Below are positions 17,586 to 18,416 of a stretch of 64,000 bases of DNA, piece after piece (the first letter of the stretch is position 1; the number at the start of each line of letters is the position of its first letter). This DNA is from Selaginella moellendorffii (lineage: Eukaryota > Plantae > Lycopodiophyta): positions 699,270 to 763,269 of the forward strand of contig NW_003314291.1 of the NCBI RefSeq assembly GCF_000143415.4, in the 5' to 3' direction. The notes under the pieces were generated by a model. The model saw nothing but the letters and a program-made list of their open reading frames with translations, did not search any database and was not told where the DNA came from. Both the position numbers and the translations under genes were made by a program.

Positions 17586-18416
17586 ATGGAACACGAAATC
17601 TCCAACTTTTATGTCGGAGGTACCGCGGGCTACTACGAAAAGCCATCACTTTCAAACCTCGAGACAGCAAAGAACCTGTTTCAGCAGCTCCTGGTAAGCC
17701 GGAGTGTCGCGGCCGAAGCAAGTAAGATATGGAACAACCTGGGCTTCTCTCTGAAAACAATCGTTGACGGAGAAATGGAGTTCGCAGTTGTCTCAGAGTC
17801 TCCAAAGCACAGGGGACAAGGGAACGGCTTCTACGTCGTGAAGCTTCTTCCGAAGAAACGCCAGCCAAATGCCACGCCGCAGGGGAATATCGTTCTACAA
17901 GCCATGCACACTCCTTCGGATCTTCACATCCACAAGGTGGCATTCAAGCTGCTCATGGAAAGCAGCCTCTTCATAGCAGCGGCCTGGAACACCACGCACA
18001 GGAGAAACGTCGACCTTGGCAAAGAAGCCATGTCATATTTCAACTCGTTCACGGCTGCTGTGGCGAGAAGCTTCCCGAAGCCGAGAATCATCCAGCTCCA
18101 TGCCTTCGACGCGACCTCTCACAAGATCAAGGGAGACATGATACTCAGCTCCTCCAAATCACAGGCCTCGGTCGGCGATGACGAGCAGTATCAGAGAGTC
18201 GTGTCCCGGATGAGAGCAGAGCTGGCGAAGTTCGTGATCCTTCACTTCCCAAAGGATGTCAAAGAGCTGGGTGGTACTCTCAACGTAAACGCCAAAGTTT
18301 TCTACGAGAACAATCCCAGGGGGCTCTTCTTCCACGTCGAGATGAGCATGCCTCTGCGGCTGGATATGAGAGACAAGCCGGAGGCAAGGAGCGGCTTCAT
18401 CCGAAGCTTTCTCTAA
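17586..18416 (+). CDS. Intronless 276-aa protein of bacterial appearance; putative Zn-dependent hydrolase fold (poly-gamma-glutamate-hydrolase / N-formylglutamate-amidohydrolase-like)
   Basis: Clean ORF with coding-like codon usage. Motifs GNGFYVV, VLQAMHTPSDLH, AAAWNTTHRR, IIQLHAF, ELGGTLNVN and FFHVEMSMPLR. The family call is from memory. Confidence 0.55.
   Translation: MEHEISNFYVGGTAGYYEKPSLSNLETAKNLFQQLLVSRSVAAEASKIWNNLGFSLKTIVDGEMEFAVVSESPKHRGQGNGFYVVKLLPKKRQPNATPQGNIVLQAMHTPSDLHIHKVAFKLLMESSLFIAAAWNTTHRRNVDLGKEAMSYFNSFTAAVARSFPKPRIIQLHAFDATSHKIKGDMILSSSKSQASVGDDEQYQRVVSRMRAELAKFVILHFPKDVKELGGTLNVNAKVFYENNPRGLFFHVEMSMPLRLDMRDKPEARSGFIRSFL

Follow-up and report, generated by a model that had tools for sequence, protein, structure and literature searches.

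A Selaginella gene of probable bacterial descent encodes a predicted zinc amidohydrolase from an unnamed prokaryotic family

The stretch of Selaginella moellendorffii DNA analysed here in its entirety (64 kb, referred to below as the window) carries an intact, intronless open reading frame (ORF) of 276 amino acids which is, with good probability, a genuine nuclear gene of bacterial descent, which most likely came from a low-GC bacterium related to Rickettsiaceae-like lineages, in a single transfer into the ancestor that the Selaginellales share with the Lycopodiales, and encoding a predicted zinc amidohydrolase. Claims of gene transfer from bacteria to plants are many, but contested; in the present case embedding in host DNA, placement within a clade and host-like composition, which are the main criteria among those tested, all speak for transfer, and passage of the gene from bacteria to the lycophyte lineage, long ago, is the most likely explanation of its presence. 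The gene also points to a prokaryotic enzyme family of 676 clusters, a member of a conserved CapC-linked operon, for which the plant copy, being small, soluble and free of a signal peptide, provides a convenient entry point for biochemistry.

The ORF and its surroundings

The ORF lies on the forward strand at positions 17586..18416, stop codon included, exactly where a reading of the letters alone had placed it, and opens with an ATG. The presence of a TGA in the same frame, two codons 5' of this ATG, makes an upstream extension impossible, so that the protein begins at M1, a residue that aligns with the first residues past the signal peptides of the bacterial homologs. Given the homology matches described below, the ORF is genuine rather than a product of chance. 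It is present in one copy within the window, and plant genes with multiple exons lie to either side of it, the nearest no more than a few kb away, a setting that the sequence-only reading had recognized (Table 1). The genes around it include a NAC transcription factor gene, which, with its introns read through, shows 94% identity to NAC72 of S. moellendorffii, an exon of a NAD-synthase gene and a G-type lectin receptor-like kinase gene, as well as LRR and PUB genes; the flanking receptor-like kinase gene shows that plant nuclear DNA surrounds the ORF.

Four candidate introns with GT..AG boundaries can be read around the ORF (17022-18486), three ahead of it and one directly past its stop codon, and in each of them a pyrimidine tract precedes the AG. 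All four lie outside the coding region, as the sequence-only reading had noted. A scan for sigma-70 promoters and terminators around the ORF returned matches at chance level, with no residue of bacterial expression signals. The gene is apparently unannotated: an exact-sequence look-up of the ORF found no protein on record (three neighbouring ORFs gave the same outcome, which is uninformative as they run through introns), and no matching protein was found in the S. moellendorffii protein sets of the searched database, within the length limits of the search. Because these sets hold no matching protein, the gene was probably missed by proteome-based screens.

Table 1. Positions of the ORF, its predicted active-site codons, candidate introns and neighbouring genes in the window
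Feature	Position	Strand	Basis or equivalent
NAC transcription factor gene	5879..7000	-	S. moellendorffii NAC72 match
NAD-synthase exon, plant gene neighbour	10005-10412		
Candidate 5'-UTR introns, three GT..AG segments of 63-72 nt	about 17022-17084, 17244-17315, 17418-17483	+	Read from sequence
In-frame stop codon TGA, two codons 5' of ATG	17577..17579	+	Sequence
Intronless ORF, 276 aa	17586..18416	+	ORF listing
Predicted zinc ligands 1 and 2, codons H108..D112 (AMH-TPS-D)	17907..17921	+	Equivalent to PghP H40/E45
R139 codon (NTTHR), invariant in family	18000..18002	+	Alignment
Predicted zinc ligand 3, codon H172 (IQLHAF), invariant	18099..18101	+	Equivalent to PghP H103
Predicted general-base Glu and substrate-carboxylate-anchoring Arg, codons E252..R258 (HVEMSMPLR)	18339..18359	+	PghP E165 / CPA E270; PghP/PghL R171
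Candidate 3'-UTR intron, GT..AG segment directly past stop codon	18424..18486	+	Read from sequence
G-type lectin receptor-like kinase gene	19579..23128	-	Pkinase exons 19579-20901, B_lectin 22145-23128

An unnamed prokaryotic family with two plant members

The window protein, which had been reported to match no recognized plant family, indeed matches nothing in Pfam (even at E<=10), NCBIfam or the sequences of the PDB, and a search of the PDB with a profile of the whole family yielded only noise. In contrast, protein searches covering 5.8 and 15 billion proteins uncovered a large set of relatives, amounting in the exhaustive search to 676 representative clusters at E<=1e-3, 320 at E<=1e-10 and 6 at E<=1e-30. 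All non-plant relatives are bacterial or archaeal, and every relative contig examined shows prokaryotic gene organisation; the family is a prokaryotic one, unnamed, with no Pfam model and without a characterised member.

The only other plant member found is that of the clubmoss Diphasiastrum complanatum (about 50-53% identity, E 1e-75), where two identical intronless copies lie on a 70.7-Mb chromosome with ORF-poor flanks, and among the named matches of the above searches no eukaryote other than these two lycophytes was present. The Selaginella copy being itself unannotated, however, protein searches would not reveal unannotated copies in other plants, and the gene may be more widespread across plants than protein databases show. 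The plant members are 46-53% identical to extant bacterial members. In bacteria the gene is accessory and patchy; two clade-specific peptide patterns retrieved no close relative from the GTDB species representatives, a null result that covers close relatives only, and a metagenome scan returned distant members only (24-31% identity), which were used solely for operon context.

Predicted fold and active site

The AlphaFold model of the window protein is of high confidence (pLDDT 94.5, pTM 0.93), and two independent structure searches, one by VIA-align seeded with Foldseek and the other by exhaustive VIA-align, match it to the carboxypeptidase-like superfamily of zinc amidohydrolases. The zinc-hydrolase fold that had been suggested from motifs is thereby upheld at the level of the model. 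The highest Z scores of the modelled structure were obtained with the N-formylglutamate amidohydrolase family (FGase, PF05013), namely 13.4 for 2odf (rmsd 2.9 over 179 residues) and 12.0 for 2q7s, residues 71-276 being covered; AstE scored 11.8-11.9, M14 and CCP5 about 10-12, YndL 11.3 and PghP 10.6.

Family-wide conservation was evaluated in an alignment of 128 sequences (126 prokaryotic rows and the two plants). The five motifs singled out by the sequence-only reading, LQAMH (104-108), NTTHR (135-139), IQLHAF (169-174), LGGTLN (228-233) and HVEMSMPLR (250-258), are all present and fall on invariant or near-invariant columns: H108, D112 and H172 are invariant, as are R139 and D143, while R258 is conserved in 100%, E252 in 99% and N233 in 98% of the sequences. 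We predict a mononuclear zinc amidohydrolase with a mode of action like that of carboxypeptidase A, PghP or FGase, in which H108, D112 and H172 would hold the zinc ion, E252 would activate a water molecule, and R139, N233 and R258 would bind carboxylates of the substrate. Judging by its position, R139 is likely the counterpart of the arginine that polarises the carbonyl or carboxylate group in carboxypeptidases. We infer zinc binding and this chemistry for the plant protein, and the predicted carboxylate-binding site suggests that the substrate is likely an acidic amide, of the γ-glutamyl-peptide or N-acyl-amino-acid type.

Relation to characterised hydrolases

The layout of the motifs had been likened to that of the poly-γ-glutamate (γ-PGA) hydrolases PghP and PghL (YndL), which are phage-type enzymes of Pfam family PF05908 (Gamma_PGA_hydro; PDB 3a9l, 5onj). 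In PghP, zinc is bound by H40, E45 and H103, the substrate is anchored by Asn151 and Arg171, Glu165 is catalytic, and H78, T80 and S81 are specific to γ-PGA (PMC6506827). The window protein shares the predicted fold with these enzymes, and its motifs are collinear with those of PghP: the zinc triad pairs with H108, D112 and H172, the acid being an Asp at H+4, one residue nearer the His than the Glu at H+5 of PghP, and Glu165, Asn151 and Arg171 pair with E252, N233 and R258 in what is a weak underlying alignment. The residue equivalences as a whole draw on this collinear but weak alignment together with the fold matches. In contrast, H78, T80 and S81 (the LHxTST motif) have no counterpart; the corresponding segment aligns with D143-L-(A/G)-(H/K), without a conserved T or S, and the invariant R139 and D143 of the family stand where PghP has its γ-PGA-specific residues. 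Furthermore, the family differs from PghP in that some 75 residues at the N-terminus form an additional α/β subdomain, as seen in the model, and in that its bacterial genes are chromosomal and operon-encoded rather than phage genes.

Sequence comparisons with these hydrolases were weak throughout. PF05908 is the only Pfam family matched repeatedly, by 6 of the 128 family members (best E 0.0049), and its gathering score is not reached by the window protein. Comparisons of the family profile by hhalign were not significant, either with the single PghP of φNIT1 (probability 0.5%) or with an alignment of nine PghP members (E 0.038, probability 1.4%), in which 154 columns nevertheless paired collinearly. 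Since significance is not reached in these comparisons and the residues specific to γ-PGA are lacking, the protein is not a PghP family member. Of the earlier likening to PghP, the collinear arrangement of catalytic residues stands, without significant sequence homology.

FGase is a metal-dependent amidohydrolase that acts on an N-acyl-glutamate and functions as a cytosolic catabolic enzyme. It provides the best structural matches, yet its alignment leaves out the first 70 residues of the model; PF05013 is not matched by the window protein, nor is it among the 25 families most often matched by the 128 members. In addition, FGase enzymes are cytosolic, whereas the bacterial relatives of the window protein carry signal peptides and belong to an envelope-type operon. 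M14 enzymes, carboxypeptidase A, CCP5 and AstE share the predicted fold over the whole protein (residues 2-276, Z 10-12), as well as the order of elements, in which His-x-acid, Arg, His and Glu are located at strand ends. However, the metal-binding motif is H-x3-D...H here and HxxE...H (H-x2-E) in M14, sequence identity to M14 and AstE is 7-10%, and no match to the Pfam families Peptidase_M14 (PF00246) or AstE_AspA was found.

Bacterial operon context and possible substrates

At 10 of 18 bacterial loci, a gene for a CapC-domain protein is located in the same operon, a genomic link to CapC-type proteins that is shared with PghP-type hydrolases. Bacterial members also occur fused to large envelope-type proteins, including the CapC-domain protein, and in many bacteria the operon holds an ~800-aa partner and giant proteins, one culturable carrier of the operon being Sulfidibacter corallicola; in a Pfam scan of the long fusion proteins and operon partners, CapC and weak HEAT repeats were the only domains recovered. 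Proximity to pgs/cap genes, as put forward in the sequence-only reading, is therefore borne out as far as CapC is concerned, but here CapC occurs in fusion proteins that belong to an uncharacterised operon and not to a canonical pgsBCA system.

These observations bear on whether the enzyme hydrolyses a γ-glutamyl or other anionic polymer or is instead a small-molecule N-acyl-amino-acid amidohydrolase, resembling FGase or succinylglutamate desuccinylase. The latter possibility, which is a serious one though we consider it unlikely, could explain why FGase and AstE rank ahead of YndL and PghP in the structure searches, and would also suit the missing γ-PGA-specific residues and the absence of an export signal from the plant protein. 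On the other hand, the differences in Z amount to just 2-3 units and FGase aligns with part of the protein only; FGase does not figure among the 25 most matched Pfam families, while Gamma_PGA_hydro is the most frequent weak match. Furthermore, the bacterial proteins are exported, linked to an operon and fused to envelope-type proteins, one of them the CapC-domain protein, all of which fits a surface macromolecule better as a substrate than a catabolite of the cytosol.

Signs of long residence in the plant genome

The third-position GC content (GC3) of the ORF, 0.68, falls in the range of the genes around it (0.59-0.82) and lies well above that of the bacterial homologs (0.25-0.38). That of the Diphasiastrum gene is 0.36, near the bacterial homologs, a value that is uninformative because the GC content of the local Diphasiastrum genome is also low (0.38). 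At the N-terminus, an extension of at least 15 aa is found in 111 of 126 prokaryotic rows and a strongly hydrophobic stretch in 102 of them, while neither occurs in the two plant proteins, both of which lack the signal peptide of the bacterial members. The plant protein is thus probably cytosolic. The Pro residue before the first His, present in all 126 prokaryotic rows, is replaced by M107 in Selaginella and by Leu in Diphasiastrum. The six invariant residues of the family are all present in both plant proteins. Where conservation is >=80%, as in 36 columns, the family residue is retained in 32 of them by Selaginella and in 35 by Diphasiastrum, numbers that lie within the bacterial range of 28-36. 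Two near-invariant positions beside the predicted metal site are changed in Selaginella (P107M and T115I), and these changes, taken together with the longer branch of the sequence in the tree below, make an altered or relaxed function possible.

A sequence of events can be proposed in which the transferred gene would have encoded an exported enzyme of ~290 aa, whose signal peptide would have been lost in the plant lineage, leaving a start at the mature N-terminus; codon usage would then have drifted to the host pattern while the catalytic core was kept.

Phylogeny, donor and alternative histories

A careful tree was calculated from 28 rows of the family alignment, leaving out the 100 more distant ones. 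The two plant sequences form a monophyletic pair (UFboot 96, SH-aLRT 75) inside a 13-row clade with support of 100/97, whose other 11 rows are bacterial and which includes Rickettsiaceae-like metagenomic sequences; in the approximately unbiased (AU) test, a topology in which the plants branch beside these 11 rows, as their sister group rather than nested among them, is not rejected (p=0.147). The bacterial origin put forward in the sequence-only reading is supported by this placement and by the finding of just two plant sequences among 676 clusters. The 13-row clade represents one branch of the family.

We infer a single ancient transfer, which would have taken place in the common ancestor of the Selaginellales and Lycopodiales, from a donor with a low GC content; among relatives anchored to contigs, those closest to this donor are Rickettsiaceae-like. 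The sequences that suggest such a Rickettsiales-like donor are those of MraY on two metagenomic contigs (L004 and L001), which share 70-74% identity with Rickettsiaceae but no more than ~61% with other Alphaproteobacteria; the donor assignment rests on this similarity. If the transfer predates the split between Selaginellales and Lycopodiales, the acquisition would be lycophyte-wide, and if the donor lineage was Rickettsiaceae-like, bacteria must long ago have lived in association with the plant inside its cells.

The history could instead have involved two independent transfers from related bacteria, into the Selaginella and Diphasiastrum lineages separately, in keeping with the moderate support for plant monophyly, with the equal similarity of the Diphasiastrum protein to bacterial P0003 (53%) and to Selaginella (53%), with the bacterial-like GC3 of the Diphasiastrum gene, and with the lack of demonstrable synteny. 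However, the AU test rejects a grouping of Diphasiastrum with the most similar bacterial sub-clade (P0003/4/8) apart from Selaginella (p=0.006), both plant proteins start just past the bacterial signal peptide and have lost the otherwise invariant Pro107, and the low GC3 is deprived of meaning by the local GC content; two transfers are thus improbable. It is also quite improbable that the Selaginella ORF is by now an intact relic of transfer, unexpressed or functionally relaxed. Its absence from the annotated proteome, a branch twice the length of that of Diphasiastrum (0.62 vs 0.28) and the two changes beside the metal site could be read in this manner, but a frame of 828 nt would not stay open over the residence implied by full amelioration of GC3, and the conservation of 32 of 36 columns and of all six invariant residues is within the bacterial range.

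Ancient vertical inheritance, either from the alphaproteobacterial ancestor of mitochondria or from an early eukaryote, followed by loss in all lineages but the lycophytes, is very improbable. The Rickettsiales are an order often linked in discussion to mitochondrial ancestry, the nearest bacterial contigs are Rickettsiales-like, and unannotated plant copies escape protein databases. Nevertheless, no other eukaryote is present among the named matches, only 6 clusters are reached at E<=1e-30, and a later transfer is suggested both by the level of identity to extant bacteria and by the position in a shallow sub-clade of this large prokaryotic family. In bacteria the gene is accessory and patchy, with no close relative in the GTDB representatives. 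Finally, bacterial contamination or an assembly chimera, which the intronless, bacterial-like and unannotated state of the ORF might evoke, is hardly credible for a sequence that lies in a gap of at most ~2.7 kb between a plus-strand ORF ending at 16876 and the minus-strand kinase exons from 19579, has a host-like GC3 unlike that of any bacterial homolog, lacks a signal peptide, and has its counterpart in a second lycophyte, where the scaffold is of chromosome scale and the flanks are poor in ORFs.

Implications and precedents

In a more specific scenario, which is improbable, a Rickettsiaceae-like obligate intracellular bacterium residing in cells of the lycophyte ancestor ~400 million years ago would have donated an envelope-polymer enzyme linked to the CapC operon, and this enzyme, kept in the cytosol without an export signal, may attack the same polymer on intracellular bacteria. 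If this were true, the gene would be a plant tool for immunity or symbiont control of bacterial origin, as well as a molecular fossil of an ancient association between plants and Rickettsiales and a handle on a widespread, unnamed bacterial operon.

Transfers reported earlier from bacteria to the nuclei of land plants include those of a MAG glycosylase (PMC5570899) and of an L-Ala-D/L-Glu epimerase (PMC3605383), and share with the present case an intronless gene of bacterial type, fixed in the plant nucleus with host-like composition. The present gene differs from them in that it is so far known from lycophytes only and is absent from the searched S. moellendorffii protein sets, in that its family has no characterised member, and in the Rickettsiaceae-like character of the donor-like lineage. 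Rickettsial DNA has been described in the mitogenome of a fern, an early vascular plant (PMC10027690), and offers a precedent for the entry of Rickettsiales-type DNA into early vascular plants, although the gene reported here is nuclear and not mitochondrial.

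The Selaginella gene and its setting

The gene is supported as a Zn-amidohydrolase gene of bacterial origin that is restricted to lycophytes, as far as annotated proteomes show. The 276-aa frame picked out by the sequence-only reading is borne out; it starts with ATG and is not extendable in the 5' direction, since an in-frame TGA lies two codons before that start. The five motifs named in that reading are all found in the protein, where they coincide with the positions best conserved across the family, and its four GT...AG segments exist as candidate introns, read from the sequence and all lying outside the frame. 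A 12-codon upstream ORF directly follows the last putative 5'-UTR acceptor.

The long ORFs of the window are plant genes, placing the gene, present in one copy within the window, in a small interval flanked by multi-exon Selaginella genes. The NAC ORF is 94% identical to S. moellendorffii NAC72 over its full length, the shortfall being intron read-through, and this match confirms the species. The B_lectin and kinase exons make up a convergent G-type lectin S-receptor-like kinase gene that ends approximately 1 kb 3' of the frame. The GC3 of the frame is 0.68, as compared to 0.59-0.82 in neighbouring genes and 0.25-0.38 in bacterial homologs; bacterial contamination is effectively excluded by this host-like composition and by the plant neighbours on both sides. 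Protein searches, limited to lengths of 0.55-1.75 times the query, returned no near-100% identical S. moellendorffii protein, although that proteome is in the searched database, and an exact-sequence look-up did not find the protein on record. On this basis the gene is apparently unannotated, unless its annotated length falls outside these limits.

Features of the window and of related loci
Feature	Location	Strand	Remark
Amidohydrolase gene	17586-18416	+	276 aa
Candidate intron	about 17022-17084	+	GT...AG, pyrimidine tract before AG; upstream of ORF
Candidate intron	about 17244-17315	+	GT...AG, pyrimidine tract before AG; upstream of ORF
Candidate intron	about 17418-17483	+	GT...AG, pyrimidine tract before AG; upstream of ORF
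Candidate intron	about 18424-18486	+	GT...AG, pyrimidine tract before AG; downstream of ORF
Upstream ORF	17485-17523	+	ATG at 17485, TAG at 17521-17523
NAD-synthase exon	10005-10412	+
NAC factor	5879-7000	-	long plant ORF
B_lectin domain	22145-23128	-	long plant ORF
Kinase exons	19579-20901	-	receptor kinase gene 19579-23128 with B_lectin ORF
LRR protein	window		plant ORF
U-box/ARM proteins	window		two plant ORFs
Ty3-type retrotransposon	window
Diphasiastrum copies	L007:8500-10950; L008:8500-10950		CM055099.1, 37.90 and 38.00 Mb
Conserved uncharacterised operon	L004:5043-20127; L091:2842-20975		also L002, L003, L102, L103, L104, L108, L111
CapC-domain protein	L004:5043-7430		degenerate enzyme fold at residues 403-610
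DUF2608 (PF11019) genes	L001:8996-9826; L009:3329-4318		near solo family copies

Relatives and origin of the plant genes

Pfam, NCBIfam and PDB sequence searches gave no match to the protein. A word-indexed search of 5.8 billion proteins yielded seven: a 267-aa protein from the clubmoss Diphasiastrum complanatum, annotated as hypothetical (50% identity), and six metagenomic proteins of 287-292 aa (39-45%). Exhaustive HMMER searching of 1.84 billion representatives extended the family to 676 clusters at E<=1e-3, 320 at E<=1e-10 and just 6 at E<=1e-30, and the members that carry a name, for example in Sulfidibacter corallicola, are all labelled "hypothetical protein". The ESM Atlas gives structural neighbours at TM 0.81-0.83, which are clusters without a name; they come from Bathyarchaeota, Myxococcota, Actinomycetota and Bacteroidota, and the last of these bears a T9SS sorting tail.

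The bacterial origin proposed initially gains support from phylogeny and from the prokaryotic gene organisation of every family contig examined. A careful tree (IQ-TREE, LG+C20+F+G4 by PMSF) was built from 28 rows of the family alignment, the 19 nearest and 9 more distant, leaving aside the other 100. Both plant proteins fall with 11 metagenomic proteins in a 13-row clade (support 100/97) and pair with each other (96/75), and a quick 64-row tree agrees. An AU test rejected the placement of Diphasiastrum with the most similar bacterial sub-clade (P0003, P0004 and P0008) apart from Selaginella (p=0.006); a position of the plants as sister to the 11 bacterial rows, instead of inside them, was not rejected (p=0.147). 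Beside these results, a single origin of both plant genes is favoured by two shared sequence traits: both proteins start at the point where bacterial signal peptides end, and both have replaced the proline that precedes the first metal histidine, invariant in 126/126 prokaryotic rows (APH to AMH or ALH). The most likely course is entry from a Rickettsiaceae-like lineage, ahead of the divergence of Selaginellales and Lycopodiales.

In Diphasiastrum the gene is present twice, as intronless copies of identical sequence that lie 100 kb from each other on one 70.7-Mb chromosome, with ORF-poor flanks. They sit within a near-identical duplicated segment of ~2.4 kb whose flanks are unrelated, which points to a recent local duplication. 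Neither the Diphasiastrum locus tag nor this transfer is named in the literature searched.

Among 36 columns conserved at >=80% in prokaryotic members, Diphasiastrum keeps 35 and Selaginella 32, bacterial rows ranging from 28 to 36 (median 34). The Selaginella changes are P107M, T115I, G173A, which occurs in the bacterial clade too, and L261M, and its terminal branch is longer than that of Diphasiastrum (0.62 versus 0.28); some shift of function in Selaginella is possible. An intact frame, conservation of the catalytic residues and codon usage fully ameliorated to the host all speak for purifying selection on the plant genes over a long period.

Fold and active site

The proposal of a Zn-hydrolase fold holds. 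An AlphaFold2 model from the 128-sequence alignment (pLDDT 94.5, pTM 0.93) was submitted to Foldseek, to VIA-align on Foldseek's list, and to an independent VIA-align search over 48,161 chains, all of which returned the Zn-dependent carboxypeptidase-like amidohydrolase superfamily. The matches comprise N-formylglutamate amidohydrolase (FGase) family entries 2odf (Z 13.4, 179 aligned, rmsd 2.9) and 2q7s (Z 12.0), succinylglutamate desuccinylase (Z 11.8-11.9), M14 carboxypeptidases and CCP5 (Z 11-12), YndL/PghL (Z 11.3), Csd4 (Z 10.8), PghP (Z 10.6) and Amidase_3 enzymes (Z about 9). No sequence criterion places the protein in the PghP, FGase or M14 families.

Residues H108, D112, R139, Q170, H172 and R258 are invariant in the family, and D143, T231, N233, H250 and E252 nearly so. 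Profile-profile comparison with PghP of φNIT1 plus eight homologs from diverse phages was not significant (probability 1.4%, E 0.038) but collinear across 154 columns, pairing H108/D112/H172/N233/E252/R258 with PghP H40/E45/H103/N151/E165/R171. In PghP, H40, E45 and H103 bind zinc, E165 corresponds to Glu270 of carboxypeptidase A, and N151 and R171 bind substrate carboxylates, R171S abolishing activity (PMC6506827). H78, T80 and S81, which are specific to γ-PGA hydrolases (PMC6506827), have no counterpart in the window protein. The PghP-like layout suggested earlier thus stands as regards motif order, but not as a significant profile match or in the γ-PGA-specific residues. Fold match and residue pairing lead to the prediction that the protein works like a mononuclear zinc amidohydrolase with an arginine-rich carboxylate-binding pocket.

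The bacterial operon

On L004, a contig of Rickettsiaceae-like type, the order begins with a CapC-domain protein of 796 aa, followed by an 858-aa protein without Pfam match, the enzyme, and proteins of 1804 and 1278 aa. This order is also present in S. corallicola and was detected by tblastn in L002, L003, L102, L103, L104, L108 and L111; in L107, CapC was the one gene of the order detected beside the enzyme. Across loci, the operon reads as a CapC-domain fusion (800-1040 aa), an ~800-aa protein, the exported amidohydrolase, and two giants of ~1700 and ~1300 aa; the ~800-aa partner and both giants are Pfam-less. The expected pgs/cap neighbourhood is supported: a CapC-domain gene is linked in 10/18 loci (GC 0.34-0.71), although the locus differs from canonical pgsBCA, and Pfam recognised no CapB- or PgsB-type ligase among the operon genes scanned. 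Extra N-terminal sequence of 15 aa or more in 111/126 prokaryotic members and a strongly hydrophobic N-terminal stretch in 102/126, together with CapC linkage, indicate that the bacterial enzyme is exported and associated with a membrane protein of CapC type.

A degenerate version of the enzyme fold, with arginine in place of both metal histidines, lies within the L004 CapC protein (hhalign probability 93.7%) and may serve as a non-catalytic module for substrate binding; CapC proteins of 726 aa, grouped in one Atlas cluster, also match the model (TM 0.71). Among family proteins of ~1150 aa, P0026 is a fusion of the ~800-aa partner and the enzyme (BLASTP E 2e-71). P0032, P0061, P0135 and P0140 share with P0026 their length (1097-1243 aa) and C-terminal amidohydrolase domain, and are probably fusions likewise; none of the five has a Pfam match.

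The donor-like lineage

In L004 (P0008, 46% identity) and L001 (P0006), the family gene lies downstream of a murE-murF-mraY cluster, no more than a few kb away. The MraY of these clusters is 70-74% identical to those of Rickettsiaceae (Rickettsia, Tisiphia), and its identity to those of other Alphaproteobacteria does not exceed about 61% (best 80 GTDB hits). These two contigs suggest a Rickettsiaceae-like donor, and a documented precedent, Rickettsiales DNA in the mitogenome of a fern (PMC10027690), makes a donor of this type plausible. All clade contigs are of low GC (0.33-0.42), and no close relative was found among the GTDB species representatives, so that donor-like lineages are known from metagenomes only. 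DUF2608 genes lie near solo family copies on two low-GC contigs, and on L001 a phage-type integrase and a Tn3 transposase lie directly downstream, hinting that solo copies are situated in mobile regions.
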